Shown piece after piece: positions 41,623 through 50,300 of a DNA stretch of 64,000 nucleotides. The DNA comes from Oculina patagonica. Its lineage: Eukaryota. How positions within the stretch are numbered: position 1 is the first letter of the stretch; each line of letters opens with the position of its first letter. The notes under the pieces are model-generated. The model made no database searches. It saw nothing but the letters and a program-made list of their open reading frames with translations, and was not told the origin of the DNA. The stretch spans positions 10,664,001 to 10,728,000 of the forward strand of contig NC_135770.1 in assembly GCF_052425735.1 (NCBI RefSeq). The letters are read 5' to 3'. The translations under genes and the position numbers were made by a program.

Positions 41623-44600
41623 AAAATCAATATATGAGATTTATAAAAATGTCCGCAAAGGACTTTAAACAAACAAGAAAAGTTAGTCAACATGGGTGTG
41701 ACATTATGACATTATTTTTTGATAATTTTTTACAAAGATTTAAAAATAAATGAGTTTGGAAATTTGTAAAACAAAGTTGGGAACGAGTGTCCTATGAGAA
41801 TAAATTAATTTAATATTGGATTAATCAATTTTGTTGCAAATCATGTATTGTTTGTATAAAACTGTTTTAGAGGTTTACAACAATGTAAAGTTAATAATTC
41901 TGTACCTGGTTTGAATACTTTTTTGCTTTGATATTTCCTTTGTGCTGCCATGTTTGTTTTTGCAAAGCTTGATAGGGGATTATGACATCACTGCATGGTC
42001 ATTAGTTGCTGTTTGGTTTAGAGCTGCATTATCATTTCCAGCTAGTGTTAAATCCCCTTCGCAGTTATTGTTTTGTGCCGGAGGGAGGGAGCGTTGCATA
42101 ACGAGCCCAAACATTGGCTGCAAAGGAGACTAGTGTTCATACAGTACAATAACCATTAGAAAACAAATAAAAGGAAAAAGATCCCCAAAAGACAGGAAAT
42201 GTAGTATGGTGTATATCAGGGGGTGGGGGTACTACTCCCTCATATAGGCTATTTAGGTCTGTGCCATGGGATAGCTAGGGTATGGTTTCAGCCCATACAA
42301 GGGTACCCCTTTTGCCCCTTTTGACATTGTGATTCTGGTGTGATCTTCCTTTGATAGGGCTTAAAATTACAGTGCATAAACATCCAGCTAAAGGAAAAAG
42401 ATATTGTTTCTTAAAACTGAATAACCCATTAAACTTTCGATGTCACAGAACAGAAATAAAGGTGGGCTTTTCACAAAATCCGGGTATCAATTGCCCATTT
42501 TCTACCCTTTAATATTTCTCCCCCTCCCCTCCCCTCTTAGCCCCCGAAAAGGAAAAAATGGTTACCCCTTTTTAAAAATGTTTGCATTCAAATTCTGTGC
42601 AGGTACATCGAGCAATAGCTAGCAATGAAATAGGATGAGAGTTAAGAGTTGAAGCTGTGCTAGCAGAATCCTGAGAGACCTGAGATATATTGCATGACGA
42701 GCCCATTATTATTTATACTTATTACACAACGACAAGAACGCCTTGCTAATCTTTTCAATTTAGTATATAAAGAGGTCGCTAGACGAGTGCAAACGTGACC
42801 CTGTTTGCATAACGATCGAGAGTAATCCATATCGACACAGTCCTTCGACAGATGACATGTTCGCAAAACCTCTCAACTGCACATTTTCTTTTCTCTTTGA
42901 CTTCTCTTTTTCGAACAATAGAGGCAAAAATTCATAACCACCCCCTTCCTTCGCCTGCTACGGAAGCTATAAAAATTCACAAAATATGGCGGGAATGCTT
43001 TGGCGGGATTTTAATAATCTCTTCCAAAGGTCGTATTGCGTAACGTACACAACACGTGATCACCGCAGTGTGTTTTGAAACACAATGTGATGATCGACAT
43101 CGCTTACTAGACTGTGATGTCTGAACAAGTTACGAGTTTATCATGGAACTCCAGGGCCGTTAGTCCTTTCCATCATGATCCAAACAATTGCCACGCATCA
43201 AGGAGTCGCCATTAACAAAGATCCAGCCCTCGAGTTTACTCAGCAGTGAATGAACAGTGAGTAAAAAGCTTTGTTTGTTTTGAGTTTACTGCGATGGCGT
43301 TCTCTGTGATACATCACTGGTTACATTTACCGGTCCGGTCAAGACTGATTTCGTACGTGTACAGTATTTGATTTGATTGAGGTTAAGCTGGGTTATGATT
43401 ATTATACCAGTGAACTGATTGATCGACTTGCCGCGGCGTGCAAATGGCATGTGATGAAGAGTTCGTTTAGCGGGATCGACCGGATGATGAATAACAGTTT
43501 AATAGCGCATAAACAATATTAAAACGAACGCAGCATCGATGAATATTAGCAATATACTTCGCCTTTTTTCCGCGGTTTGGAAAGTCTGTTTTCACTGTAA
43601 TAGCCATAAATAGTTTTTATTTTACTGTGTTATGTAATCAATAACTGAACTCAAAACACAGCGAATCTGCCGGAACGAGCAAAGACAAATACTAGGCGAA
43701 ATTCAGATAAAAATATCGTTCGAGTGGCATGATGCGGTATAAACTCGCAACTTCACTGTAACGCCAAATGCACCATATATTATCATCACCCAGATCTTTC
43801 CTCAGAATATGATTTCGTTCTTTAAGTCAAGATCAAAGGTAAATTATTTCTTAATTTAATCATTTACTCCTTATTGTTCCATTTGTTACTTCCTAAAATT
43901 CATGCCGAGCAGCAGTAAGATCACGTTAAAATCATGACAACTCAGTTGTGCACGCGCTTGTTGTAAATTTCGCCACCGCACATAGTTAAAATACGTCAGT
44001 GTGCTTCGATTTCTCTTCCGGTGAAAACTGGGTCCGACGAGAAATACTTGTTTCTTTGCGGTAAAACCTTCACAACATACGGATTGGCGATGCTTTATTG
44101 CATGTACAGGTAAATTCCCCTGAGGGAATATTTACAGTGTAGTACCATTACGATGTCGTAATAATGTTGATTTCATCTGCATATTGTCCATTATATTAGC
44201 AAGAACATTTTATCATTATATGCAGTGCCCCACGTTTATCGATTTTTTGTGCGGACGATTGAAATACTTGCGGTTTGTAAGATTTCCGGGTTTGAATCGG
44301 TTTGGAGGAATATACACCCACGTTTATAGGAATATCATAATTATTTTTATATTCTCTGATTAATCCTTTTCACATACTGTGCTAAAATTGCTGTTTTTAT
44401 CGTCTGAATTTAATATTTTCCAAATGAGACGACGTGGCTCATCCAAATGGGCTAATAAATATTTCATTCCGTACATTTATATTTCTTTTAGTTTGTTTTA
44501 TAAGATAATAAATGGAAGTTGTTATTAGAAATCAACCATTGGCGTTCGTAGCGAATCAACTTGTATGATTATAAGCTGTTCTTAAGGGCAATTATTAGTT

Positions 44601-44821
44601 TAAACATGTTTTTCCAAACAAATCACGGATTTTTTTCTTGTTTGCATAATTTTAATTTTGACAGTTCTGAGTGACGTTATGTAGCAAAACAAATAGATTA
44701 AGTTTATTTCCATGCTTTCCACTAATTAATTCAGTAGTTGCACCTTTAGTTAGGTCAGTTTCAAGTTAGTGAGCTAGATATTTTGATCAATGTGGTCAGG
44801 GTTTCATCTTTCCTCCCCTAT

Positions 44822-45082
44822 GGGGAGCCGCGATGGCGCAGTGGTGAGAGCGCTCGCCTCCCACCAATGTGGTCCGGGTTCGATTCCGGCCCGGTGCCAT
44901 ATGTAGGTTGAGTTTGTTGTTGGTTCTCGTCCTTGCTCCGAGCGTTTTTCTCCGGGTTCTCCGGTTTTCCTCCCTCCACAAAAACCAACACTTCTAAATT
45001 CCAATTCGATCGGGAATCCGAGGGCCACAGGTTTGTCAGTCGAAGACTGTTACGTGCAACCCTCATAAAACAAAGTTGATTT
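44822..45082 (+). mobile_element. tRNA-derived SINE, family A, full length
   Basis: Colinear and near-identical to 5-268; intact A and B boxes. Confidence 0.88.
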
Positions 45083-45489
45083 TTTTCTTTTTTTTTTTAT
45101 ATATATATATATATCTAATCAACGATTTTTTTGTTTGCATAATTTAAATATTGACAGATTTGTGAGATGTTGCGTTGAATTTTATTACAAAAGGATAGGA
45201 AAACAAATAGATGTAAAGTTTATTTTCATGCCTTACGCTAATTTAGTAGTTGCTCTTTTTAGTCATGTTAGTTTTAAGTGAATGATAATTTCATCAGTGT
45301 GGTCAGGTTTTTCATTTTCCGTCTCTATCACATGTTATTATTTTCTCTTCAGATTCTTAAAAACACAAAGCAGGGGTATATCCAGGATCTTATTGTTTTG
45401 TTTTTTGTTTGTTTGTTTTTTTCGGGGGCAGGGGGTGGCAGTGTAAATACAAAACTACTGCCAGTGCTAGTCCCTAACGCATTTGAGAA

Positions 45490-45774
45490 TAGAGCGGTTT
45501 TCACTTGAGTGTCGAAAGTAAATTGCGTTTTCTTTGGTTTTGCATTACTACGCTTAGTGATTGGCTTAAAAATCTCGCGCCACTTTCTCAGCCAATCAGA
45601 ACTAAAGCCAAAACCAATCGTGACTCGCTAGCGCACGTTTTCCCGCGCTTCGTGCCAGCTACATGTATTTGCTTCGAGTTTTGATTGGTTCACTGGATTG
45701 TCTGTGTCCTTTGTGATTGGCCGGAGTAATTACTTTGGTTTTGCTTTTACGACACTCAATTGAAAACTGCTGTA
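45490..45774. mobile_element. MITE with ATTGG/CCAAT internal repeats
   Basis: TIR TAGAGCGGTTTTCA.TTGAGTGTCG / CGACACTCAATTGAAAACTGCTGTA. Confidence 0.78.
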
Positions 45775-45971
45775 TGCTTTCCCTGACCAAAACAAGTACA
45801 ATCTACTCATAGGGATTTCTATCCCTAGAGATAGGGAAGTCTTAAATATCGTCAGGATTTGGAGAACCTGGGTATCTCCAACCCTTCCCTTCTCTGCCCT
45901 CCCACTCACCCACCTTATTGTTGCTGAAACTCAAAACATGATGTTTCTGTTGTTCTTTTCAGTCAGCTGTA

Positions 45972-47375
45972 ATGTACGTGGTGAATTCGTACCTCCATGT
46001 TCTAAAGAACATCGACTCCAGCTGGGGAGACTCGTCCAGCTCAACAGGCTCACGAAGCAGTACAAAGTCATCAAGACGAAGAAGGTCACGTACGTCTTCA
46101 CGTTCATCGCACAACTCATGCAAAGGCAGCCATGCTTACGGGAGCAGCTCAGAGAGCGGGCTATACAGCGAGGAACTTGTCAATTCTGGTTACTATGGAG
46201 ACGATGAGGTTGTCCGCTGTCGATGCCCAAAATGCCTCAGTGAAGCGCAAGCGAGAAAACCCAAGAATGACTTCGCGGCGGAATATGATATAATCAGTGT
46301 GGACTTGAGCGCGTGTTCAACGCCTAAAATAGAAATGCGCTACGTTCCTCCGATAAAACCGACAAATTTTGATGATTATATTATTATACCCTCGTCTAAA
46401 GAGGAATTCTTTGCTGGAAATCTAGCTCATAGCACTCCAATCCAACAGAAAAATACTGATGGCTTTGACGTTTGTATGGAGTCACCGATTGCGGCGTCGC
46501 ACGTCAGCGTCAACGCTCAGAACACGCTCAATGTACACTGCTCGTGTAAGTTATTGGAGGAGGAGGACAGCGGAAGTACGTCACCAAAGCCCGCTGTTTT
46601 GCACCGAGTAGCGAGTAACGGCACCGGAAGTTGTTGGTGGAGAGAAAACATTCTGTGGCAGCTAAAACAGCGAAATGAAGCACAAACCAAACGCTTTTTA
46701 CAACTTCAATCCAACACGCAAAGATGCCGCGCAAGAGTTAGAATCAATAGAGAACTCGCTGATTATTTGAATAAATGCGCTGAATTCCGGCCTCATTCGG
46801 AAGCTACGAGTAATAACGCCTTAATAAATATGGAAGTTGATCCTCTCGATAGATCTGAACTTGTTCTAGCGATAAGGAACCAAAAGACATCCAATGATGA
46901 AATGGAAGACGAAACACGTGTGCGATCGGACAGTATCGCGCATTTAGCAACCGCTTACCTCAAAAGACAGAGAACTTTGACGGAAGAAAAGATCACAGAG
47001 AGCGAAGAATCTTACTCTCCCGGATGCGCAAGACCCAGGATGAGCAGTCGCCCAGGAAAACGCGACAGGGTGCCCGGTAAAAAATGGCGGGAAAGCATTG
47101 TGAATCAGTTGGAGATGAGAAACTTTTTGGAATGCAAGTATTTCACGGACGCTTTAGCGCGCAGAACTATGTCTCAGTTGAGTATTACAGAAACTGTACC
47201 CTTACCCGGACCCGAGCGGGGTATGGACGAATATGACATCATCACAGATGATGAAGTAAGTAGCCTGGACTCCAGAAGTACTCTTATGAACTCGAATCAT
47301 TCCACGTCACAATCGCAGGGTTACTACAGTTCACCTTTCAACGGTCGTTTCTTTAGGCGCGGCAAGCGGAAATAG
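45972..47375 (+). CDS. Uncharacterised 467-aa Ser-rich protein with two ATG16L1-like ATG5-binding helix motifs and three LIR-like motifs (candidate autophagy adaptor)
   Basis: 1404-nt open frame in AT-rich DNA, splice acceptor at 45962 just upstream, internal duplicated motif WRE.I..QL..RN..[QE]...F. Function is inferred from motifs only. Confidence 0.8.
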   Translation: MYVVNSYLHVLKNIDSSWGDSSSSTGSRSSTKSSRRRRSRTSSRSSHNSCKGSHAYGSSSESGLYSEELVNSGYYGDDEVVRCRCPKCLSEAQARKPKNDFAAEYDIISVDLSACSTPKIEMRYVPPIKPTNFDDYIIIPSSKEEFFAGNLAHSTPIQQKNTDGFDVCMESPIAASHVSVNAQNTLNVHCSCKLLEEEDSGSTSPKPAVLHRVASNGTGSCWWRENILWQLKQRNEAQTKRFLQLQSNTQRCRARVRINRELADYLNKCAEFRPHSEATSNNALINMEVDPLDRSELVLAIRNQKTSNDEMEDETRVRSDSIAHLATAYLKRQRTLTEEKITESEESYSPGCARPRMSSRPGKRDRVPGKKWRESIVNQLEMRNFLECKYFTDALARRTMSQLSITETVPLPGPERGMDEYDIITDDEVSSLDSRSTLMNSNHSTSQSQGYYSSPFNGRFFRRGKRK

Positions 47376-50300
47376 GGTCCAGGCTCCGGTTGCAAAGGCC
47401 GACGAACAGATATCTTTTTTAGCACGACTTGAAGAAGAACTAAGTATTAATAGGGAGACATTCTTTATTCAGACCATGGTTGTACAAAGTCAGATGAACA
47501 CTAATCTAAGGATTAGTAAAAGTTAACTGAGATTTTGTTCCTTGTTTTTGCACTAAATGCGTCACAAACGAATTTTAAAAAATATATAAATTGGCATTTA
47601 CAGAAGTCAATTTGCCTCATTAATAAGTTAAATTATTTACAAATTCAAGAAATATGTCTGCCTTGGAATACATCAATCCGACTTTGAACAATTGGGCCCT
47701 GGCGTTTCTTCAAACCCGAATCGTTCCCAACCAAACTGATTAATTTTTCAACTTGGGCCCTTCACAACCATTTGATATCCATATAAATACATAACGTCGG
47801 GCAAGCAGTTTGGGTCGCAGTTTCTGAATCTAAACGATGTCAAAACAGAGAGCTATAAATGTTTAAGTAGATAATATATTAACTGTTTTATAGAAAGATG
47901 TCTGACAAAATGTATCGCTCGGCCTTAACATAACTTACTCTTCATTTGCGAGAGAACCTTAATATATTCTTAACTTGTAAAGAACTTTGAAACAAAGCGA
48001 TTCATCCGAATAAACCAGCCACTATTTTGTGAATTCGTAGTACATGTACTAATTTATAATGGTCTGTAATTCCTATTCTAAAGGGTTTTTATTTTTAGGG
48101 GTATTGACATATAATTTATCGCAGACTGTGATGTAACTGCTTTATTTAACTACATTCAACAATCAGCTTATACGCAGTCAACTAGTGCCAAGTCTGCAAC
48201 AAGAACTTTTGGAAATCGTTTTTGTACTATCGGTGTTGAAAATTTATTAATTTTTTTGGTCATCGCAAGCCTGCCCTAATCGAATATAAAAAAACATGAT
48301 TTACTGGTCTGCAACGCAAGGTGGCGGAGCAGGGAGGGGTGGGGTTGGTGCGGGGCTCGAATAGCAGAGAATTCTCATCATTCCTTTCCGAATGATATTC
48401 CATAACGCCGGGTTTTTCATCTTCTTACCTTCTTTTCCGGGCAAAATATTTTTCGAGGTTTCTCTAGATTTGAATGCAGTTTAATGGCGCGATACAACAT
48501 CGTTCGTATGCAACCTTGTAAGCAACGTGACCAATTGAATGCAACCTACACTACACGTGCACAAATCTGCCTCGCCTCCAGGCGTCCTCCTCCTTGGTCG
48601 TGCACGGCTCGCTTGGCGTTACCATCAACCCCTGCGCACCATGTTTTCCCGCCTTTCCCCCTAAAACCGCCTTAACCAATTAATGCAATCGGCGCCTGGG
48701 GACGAGGCAGTGCTCTAGTTTTGGTAACTGCCGGAGTTAGAATCGTTAATCTTGGCGGAAAATTCTTGTGAGTTCTTAAATATTGAGAGCTCAGTAGGAA
48801 AGAAATGACTAACCTACCGCGCTGTACATACTTTGTTGTTGCATGTTGTTTCACTACTGCTGTCGAAGTTGGGTTTCTGTTTATATAACAAAGATAACCT
48901 TTCCTGGGGTGCATGATAAACTTATTCAAGTTGTTGATAGACGGCTATAGTAGAGTCTCTATTTCTATAGATTAAGATTTTCGTAATGTCATTTTTTTAG
49001 AGCACCTCTTATTCGTTACTGTTTCGTTTGTAGCCAGTATAACTTCTTTCCAGGGTCTATTCTGCAAGCGTTCTAAAAAAACTCTACCTCGAAAAGAGAT
49101 GTATTTTTTGCTTGTAACGAATACCATTACCACTATTGGAACAGTTCCATTGGCCAAGGTAATGTTGTGTTTTTCAAATTCTCTCGGATGTGAAATTAAA
49201 CTTGGGAGTTTTCACATTCTATGGAAAACGCTTGATATTCAAAAGTAAATATATATCGAATTAGCCGTCAATCAAACAAAACATTCCAACTACTTTTAAA
49301 AAAGTTATGCTATGTAGAACATGATGCGCATAGGTATCTTGAATATGTTTTTCTATTTAATGACTTATTAACTATAACACTTTTCGGTCGTAAGACTGTA
49401 TCGGGCTCAAAGCCCGCGGGCTCTTCGGTCAGCAGATGGTACGAGATTGCAGTCAAACGCAAAATTTCAATGTACTTCCGGTTTCTTTCCATTCAGACGA
49501 GACGAGGGAAAAAGCTTGTAGATAAAAATGATTAAATTTTCTATGCATGCTCGGTGTAAAAAGCTTGAAAGTAGAGGATTTAACAAAATGTGGGACATTT
49601 GACAACAACAGTTTTGGCGGGAATTGCTCGGATCAAGCTTTGATCGACAAAGAATGTTCAAATCAATACAAATCAAACTCAATAGACAAGCTAGGCGTTA
49701 AATAGCACAAAATTGTTATAACTTTATTGGGCCCTGTCTAAACGCAACAATTTGAAACTATGGCCTGAAGAAGGAAAAATCTTTTACAAAACGTAACTTT
49801 AATTTCTGGTAATCTGCACGCCGAGATATTTTTTCTCTTTTGCTGTCACTACACTGTCACGAAAAATGCTATAAACAGACACGACGATACGAATCTCTCT
49901 ATGAATTTAAATGTATATTATACTGTTTACAGTAATATAGCCTGCCTTTCTCGTTTACCAAATGCGCACACAAAAACTACACAGACGCCTGCTACGCAGG
50001 TTAACAGTGATCAAAATTAGAAACCCTGCGCAGCGTAGGTGCTAAATTTATGAATGACAAAATAGGTAAATACTACGCTGTAGTCAAAATACTTTTCGCA
50101 ACAGTGAAATTCTTTATATTATACAGATATTGTTTTATTACACTAAAGGCCTGTTTATAGGAAGAAAAGTTGTCCATTGTAGGGGGTCCATACCCAGAAA
50201 CTCCGGGCGAAGAAATTTTTCATACGTTTCTTTATAAATAACCGCGAAACGTTTACACTAGAAATCACAAAGAATCAATTTTTGGCTAGGTTAGCAGAGA

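Follow-up and report, generated by a model that had tools for sequence, protein, structure and literature searches.

A candidate FYCO1-like ATG8-binding motif in an uncharacterised protein family of stony corals and sea anemones

Can an unnamed protein family without a known domain, for which no relatives were detected beyond stony corals and sea anemones, be placed in a cellular pathway by a peptide of a dozen residues? The question is raised by positions 47223 to 47258 of the window (the whole stretch of 64,000 nucleotides of Oculina patagonica DNA that was analysed), where the encoded residues resemble the LIR of FYCO1. We regard this stretch as very likely to be a functional short linear motif, and we assign a probability of roughly 0.6 to the more specific reading, that it is an ATG8-binding LIR with a FYCO1-like extension, reached by convergence. 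Since the motif is strictly conserved and looks like the FYCO1 LIR, it probably links this orphan coral and anemone protein to autophagy, as far as can be judged from sequence. LIRs are a well-known motif class and one more would be unsurprising by itself; what is probably new is a FYCO1-like LIR candidate in an uncharacterised family of Hexacorallia, and its value lies in the nature of that family and in the apparent convergence on the unusual extended mode of FYCO1, beside two helices predicted to be of the ATG5-binding type. If binding were confirmed, cnidarian autophagy would gain a lineage-specific component, one that could easily be tested in Nematostella.

The motif and the family that carries it

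The open reading frame is that of LOC144635761 of the stony coral O. patagonica and is identical to the NCBI entry 'uncharacterized protein LOC144635761 isoform X1' (P0001, 480 aa). The motif tyrosine, position 0 in what follows, is residue 421 of the 467-aa frame and Tyr434 of P0001.

45972–47375, forward strand: coding sequence of LOC144635761, 467 aa plus stop, in one exon
47223–47258, forward strand: candidate LIR, MDEYDIITDDEV, positions −3 to +8 (M431–V442 of P0001)
47232–47243, forward strand: core LIR Y-D-I-I, with the xLIR hexamer DEYDII; Y, D(+1) and I(+3) invariant
47244–47270, forward strand: C-terminal extension T-D-D-E-V-S-S-L-D, positions +4 to +12, acidic at +5 to +7 and hydrophobic at +8 and +11

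Translation of 47223–47258 on the forward strand gives exactly MDEYDIITDDEV, in agreement with the residues M-D-E-Y421-D-I-I-T-D-D-E-V of the original prediction, and the opposite strand of the same stretch translates into nothing comparable. The core Y-D-I-I follows the canonical LIR/AIM consensus [W/F/Y]-x-x-[L/I/V] and is flanked by acidic or phosphorylatable residues (D-E at −2/−1, D at +1, T/S at +4 and D-D-E at +5 to +7), the 25-residue stretch around the motif containing eight acidic and two basic residues. The iLIR check that had been proposed came out in favour of the motif, since DEYDII fits the xLIR pattern (PMC5119064), a pattern to be read with the degeneracy of the LIR core and the many false positives of such patterns in mind (PMC5119064). 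AF2, run with the family alignment, predicts the motif region to be disordered, with coil and pLDDT below 50 at residues 417–439 and 441–480.

The rest of the protein offers few other handles. A Pfam scan of the frame returned 0 families at E ≤ 10, no transmembrane segment was found (maximum 19-residue hydropathy of 0.72), and the AF2 model is mostly disorder (mean pLDDT 43.8) with few helices, the longest predicted at residues 235–260 and 382–416 of P0001. When 1.84 billion representative proteins were searched exhaustively with a profile, only six clusters were retrieved, all of the host-protein family, which thus appears, by sequence methods, to be confined to Hexacorallia. Named homologues come from the stony corals Oculina, Desmophyllum, Pocillopora, Montipora and Acropora and from the anemones Actinia and Nematostella (LOC5511866 being the Nematostella orthologue), with P0052 and P0053 as the most divergent members, and the family holds several further conserved blocks of unassigned role. 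A literature search on five family locus names found no paper. A phmmer search of all PDB chains with the motif and its surroundings (42 aa) retrieved nothing, because FYCO1 peptides are too short or the flanks too diverged, and look-alikes in the ESM Atlas (best score 0.83, low recognition) gave no usable lead.

Absence from orthologues had been named in advance as evidence against the motif; all of the 53 homologues (53/53) carry it. Position by position, over the 28 distinct motif variants among these homologues, the residues are as follows.

Position −3: L, V, I, M or A in all variants
Position −1: acidic in 27/28
Position 0: Y in 28/28
Position +1: D in 28/28
Position +2: I or V
Position +3: I in 28/28
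Position +4: T or S
Position +5: D or E in 27/28
Position +6: D or E in 26/28
Position +7: E or D in 28/28
Position +8: V, M or I in 27/28
Position +9: S or T in 26/28
Position +11: L in 24/28

The motif has hardly changed in sequence since stony corals and sea anemones diverged, and it forms an island of conservation: its mean top-residue frequency is 0.75, whereas the preceding 20 residues have 0.50 and the following 13 have 0.53. In a relative that is about 99% identical, the sole change within the motif is synonymous, and eight other codons of the gene differ nonsynonymously. Measured against the FYCO1 peptide FDIITDEEL, the coral YDIITDDEV has a BLOSUM62 score of 36, whereas 20,000 shuffles of the protein that preserve its composition averaged 13.2 and never exceeded 34; the chance figure of 0/20,000 ignores the choice among some 100 known LIRs, and allowing for it costs about two orders of magnitude and still leaves a small value. 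The pattern [FY]DIITD[DE]E, when back-translated, has a single match in the 529-Mb genome, at the motif locus, against 0 for the reversed control. The earlier claim that chance is made less likely by the extent of the match is thus backed by the shuffles, by the genome-wide pattern search and by the homologues, and we take conservation to be a stronger argument than the shuffle score for a motif beyond chance.

Likeness to the FYCO1 LIR and the coral ATG8 proteins

The FYCO1 LIR had been given as F-D-I-I-T-D-E-E-L, and the human sequence agrees, with F1280 at position 0; the coral peptide, in turn, agrees with it from 0 to +8 and again at the hydrophobic +11, so that the match does extend across core and extension as proposed. 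In the FYCO1 LIR (human F1280–L1288; PDB 5D94, 5CX3) the segment x-D-I-I-T is identical save for Phe in place of the coral Tyr, and both motifs have Asp at +5, acidic residues at +6/+7 and hydrophobic residues at +8/+11, FYCO1 L1288 and I1291 being matched by position by the coral +8 and +11. The N-terminal flanks differ: FYCO1 has Ala-Val at −2/−1, whereas the coral motif is acidic there, and position −3 is acidic in FYCO1 but hydrophobic in the coral. The hosts differ as well, since FYCO1 has RUN, coiled-coil, FYVE and GOLD domains and the coral protein has no RUN, FYVE, GOLD or other Pfam match. Homology to FYCO1 was considered and rejected, the Pfam scan being empty at E ≤ 10 and the exhaustive profile search containing no FYCO1 relative, only the host-protein family. 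We regard the likeness as convergent because homology to FYCO1 was not detected.

According to a review on LIR selectivity, an acidic residue at +7 pairs with R70, which is common to all ATG8s, and raises affinity; in FYCO1 this position starts a short amphipathic helix, D1285 (+5) binds His57 and thereby confers LC3A/B preference, LC3C (Glu) and GABARAP (Asp) repel D1285 at the His57 position, and D1277 (−3) contacts LC3B R10 (LIR selectivity review). These contacts can be compared with the ATG8 proteins of the coral itself, whose genome holds four ATG8 genes.

C6:29.08 Mb: GABARAP-like (L001/L008)
C4:60.17 Mb: LC3A/B-like (L002/L007)
C13:15.28 Mb: LC3C-like (L003/L005)
C4:6.72 Mb: GABARAPL2-like (L004/L006)

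A mixed-exon profile yielded the LC3A/B-like protein in full (P0182, 126 aa); among PDB entries it matches human LC3A chains best, that of the FYCO1 complex 5CX3 included. It keeps the basic R10/R11 on helix 1 and, in a gapless alignment to LC3A, the Arg equivalent to LC3B R70 (R72). The His57 position, read in three of the four paralogues with the GABARAPL2-like protein left out, is occupied by Asp59 in P0182, by Glu in the LC3C-like protein and by Asp in the GABARAP-like protein. In the annotated LC3C-like protein, P0063, the first exon is apparently wrong, since the K-P-F-K-Q-R-K helix 1 of Hydractinia P0122 is missing from this model.

The proposal of an LC3A/B-preferring extended LIR was accordingly borne out in part. 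An acidic residue is present at +7, with R72 of P0182 as its Arg partner, and the hydrophobic residues at +8 and +11 reproduce, at the level of sequence, the pattern of the FYCO1-type amphipathic helix; the affinity-raising part of the coral extension is plausible on these grounds. What did not hold is the His57 partner, the acidic residue at −3 and the transfer of selectivity. Asp is there at +5, but the partner of the FYCO1 Asp, His57, is missing in the three coral ATG8 paralogues examined, and by the selectivity logic of FYCO1 the coral Asp would face a like charge, an unfavourable situation. The Asp/Glu at this position rules out a transfer of LC3A/B preference and makes the mammalian His57-based selectivity rule inapplicable to the Oculina ATG8 proteins examined, and the FYCO1 rules consequently give no reading of the preferred coral paralogue.

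A binding mode can be outlined from known LIR structures. The peptide would add a beta-strand to ATG8, with Tyr434 inserted into hydrophobic pocket 1 and Ile437 into pocket 2, while Asp432/Glu433 and Asp435 would lie opposite the basic N-terminal helices of ATG8. The conserved Arg of ATG8, R70 in LC3B and R72 in P0182, would be the partner of Glu441 (+7), and Val442 (+8) and Leu445 (+11) would make up a short amphipathic turn lying on the surface of ATG8, in the manner of FYCO1. We also co-folded P0182 with residues 418–457 of P0001, and the pair obtained a score of 0.51 in three runs, the best of 3 controls reaching 0.02; this score is uncalibrated for peptides and may owe something to solved LIR complexes that the model has memorised. 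Between runs, 79% or more of the contacts are shared, and the partner pLDDT is at least 53. The co-fold mark is reached by 51/78 solved complexes and by 2/108 mismatched pairs, and scores of 0.60 or below comprise only 5/78 solved complexes and all four passing mismatches (of 180). The co-fold thus lends weak support to binding of the motif by the coral LC3A/B-like protein.

Proposed autophagy context and other readings of the motif

Two further LIR-like sites and two helices of the ATG5-interacting type (AFIM-like) were identified in the same protein. The AFIM is an alpha-helical pattern, W-x3-I-x3-L-x2-R-x3-Q/E (PMC4453027).

46278–46295, forward strand: LIR-A, second xLIR site, AEYDII, with a Y-D-I-I-[ST] core (Y118 of P0001)
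46371–46388, forward strand: LIR-B, third xLIR site, DDYIII, followed by a conserved P-S-S-x-E-E-F
46638–46685, forward strand: AFIM-like helix 1, W-x3-I-x3-L-x2-R-x3-Q (W236–Q251 of P0001)
47085–47132, forward strand: AFIM-like helix 2, W-x3-I-x3-L-x2-R-x3-E (W385–E400 of P0001)

Three xLIR matches in P0001 compare with 0.40 expected from shuffling (P = 0.0076). LIR-A and the motif at 47223–47258 have the Y-D-I-I-[ST] core in common, and Y-D-I-I is found at LIR-A in 51/53 homologues, with Y-E-I-I in the remaining two. The third site, D-D-Y-I-I-I-P, resembles the LIR of NBR1 (Y-I-I-I), in a family without the PB1/ZZ/UBA domains of NBR1. NBR1 is a PB1/ZZ/UBA cargo receptor, and its LIR is of the Tyr type, Tyr being accepted in pocket 1.

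The full AFIM pattern occurs twice in P0001, both times in predicted helices, and in 0/5000 shuffles. The candidate LIR was expected just downstream of the second helix, and this is where it lies, the Tyr being 18 residues past the end of the AF2 helix and 34 past the last AFIM residue. With a 31-column helix profile, the ATG5-binding peptide of ATG16L1 (4gdk_C, 4gdl, 4naw), whose crystal structures show it on ATG12-ATG5, came second among the 177,635 sequences of PDB; 22 residues align in register, but the E-value is 0.51, and single-sequence PDB searches with each helix region gave chance coiled-coil matches or none. An ATG5-interacting-type helix together with a function in the ATG8 pathway, both predicted in the coral protein, is what TECPR1 and ATG16L1 combine; unlike these, the coral protein is without WD40, coiled-coil, TECPR, dysferlin or PH domains and has two AFIM-like helices in one chain, so that the likeness is at the level of pattern. 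The helices and the xLIR sites fit an autophagy context, as pattern-level matches without significant homology. In the reading that we prefer, a protein equipped in this way would link ATG12-ATG5 to ATG8 at autophagic membranes.

A more ambitious reading, which we put forward tentatively and consider rather doubtful, is that the host is a Hexacorallia-specific autophagy scaffold, in which two ATG16L1/TECPR1-type helices hold ATG12-ATG5 and three LIRs, the FYCO1-like one among them, hold ATG8. Such a scaffold would replace or rival ATG16L1, within this lineage, in steering ATG8 lipidation. It could also bear on the handling of intracellular symbionts in corals and anemones, autophagy being implicated in symbiont removal and bleaching.

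In P0023, P0025–P0030, P0032 and P0036, which come from Pocillopora-like assemblies, the motif LIR is intact and helix tryptophans are replaced: at the start of helix 1 a single Trp of the pair remains, and at the start of helix 2 the Trp is gone (residues 235–236 and 385 of P0001), the sequences there reading C-G-W-R-K-D and K-K-L-R-E-S. This group may represent a diverged allele or paralogue with weakened putative ATG5 binding, or an assembly variant.

The invariance of the tyrosine could also be read in another way. At both Y-D-I-I sites Tyr is invariant in the 53 homologues and never Phe or Trp, even though Tyr to Phe is a single-base change; this is more than a role in pocket 1 demands and leaves room for a phosphotyrosine role. 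The Y-D-[IV]-I-[ST] sites would then be phosphorylated by an acidophilic kinase and recruit SH2 domains (pY-x-x-I, Src-family-like), or phosphorylation of the Tyr would switch the LIR off, as is reportedly the case for Y18 of FUNDC1. The acidic residues before the Tyr, the Ile fixed at +3 and the accessible, predicted-disordered setting would suit such sites. Conservation runs to +8/+11 in the pattern of the FYCO1 extension, however, beyond what SH2 domains usually read, and the AFIM-like helices and the NBR1-like DYIII site point to autophagy instead, while the switch version is compatible with an LIR; on balance we consider the phosphotyrosine explanation unlikely. Somewhat less probable still is a motif that binds, by beta-strand addition, some other partner recognising hydrophobic cores with acidic flanks, the candidates being a SUMO-interaction motif and a FIP200 Claw-binding motif (FIR), two classes that overlap LIRs in sequence. 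The hydrophobic I-I core followed by Thr/Ser and the acidic, Ser-rich tail D-D-E-V-S-S-L-D-S would be in keeping with them, but SUMO-interaction motifs normally have three to four aliphatic residues and no invariant aromatic one, whereas the coral motif has two aliphatics after Y-D, and the position-by-position match to FYCO1 is much closer than the fit to either class. A FIR role, moreover, would still be one in autophagy and is compatible with ATG8 binding. The family has several more conserved blocks without an assigned role, and AF2 gives no confident model, which might suggest an element without external partner, engaged in an intramolecular helix contact, or a coincidental likeness to FYCO1; we hold this to be very improbable, given that a match at the level of FYCO1 is absent from all the shuffles and that the stretch has the traits of a short linear motif, being an island of conservation between variable disordered flanks, duplicated within the protein and set in acidic surroundings. 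The convergent ATG8-binding LIR thus remains our preferred reading.

Two other candidate functions were rejected. A caspase site, D-E-Y-D|I, is contradicted by the P4 position (−3), hydrophobic in all variants, and Ile at P1' is unfavourable for caspases; a tyrosine sorting signal, Y-x-x-hydrophobic, was discarded in view of a host protein without transmembrane segment.

Transcripts of the host gene

The gene structure was examined with contigs from two public runs of two closely related organisms, and with the NCBI models.

43000–43256, forward strand: upstream non-coding exon (RNA-derived contigs), with an in-frame TGA one codon before the junction
43809–43838, forward strand: alternative first coding exon, MISFFKSRSK, followed by GTAAAT (NCBI isoform X1)
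45963–48018, forward strand: last exon (RNA-derived contigs), with the acceptor at 45962/45963 and a 3' UTR to about 48018

The contigs join 43256 to 45963 over a GT..AG gap of 2706 bases and are unbroken from 45963 to about 48018. The kind of these runs is only guessed to be RNA, and we regard the contigs as spliced transcripts because they join without the intron. Since an in-frame TGA lies one codon before the junction, translation of the contig transcript would start at the ATG at 45972, and most orthologues likewise begin at the equivalent ATG. Isoform X1 owes its additional ten residues to the exon at 43809–43838, and the Montipora model P0039 has a counterpart of this exon, MISSFKSRSK, so that the N-terminal isoform may be conserved.

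A GTAAGT at 47256, at the end of the motif, was rejected as a splice donor; it appears unused because the contigs run through 45963–48018 unspliced, and the tail past the motif is conserved in orthologues. Poly-A tag reads of a relative show mere traces across the 3' end, where expression is low or sample-dependent in these data. An upstream ATG in the 5' exon (43250 onward) opens an out-of-frame frame of 89 aa that crosses the 43256/45963 junction and overlaps the start of the main frame, possibly a regulatory uORF.

Within the intron of the host gene, repeats of very high copy occupy 45490–45771 and 44822–45065, and in one run the summed contig depth rises to about 4.5e5. The sharp read breaks at 45488–45490 and at 45771 suggest a SINE- or MITE-like element of about 280 bp.
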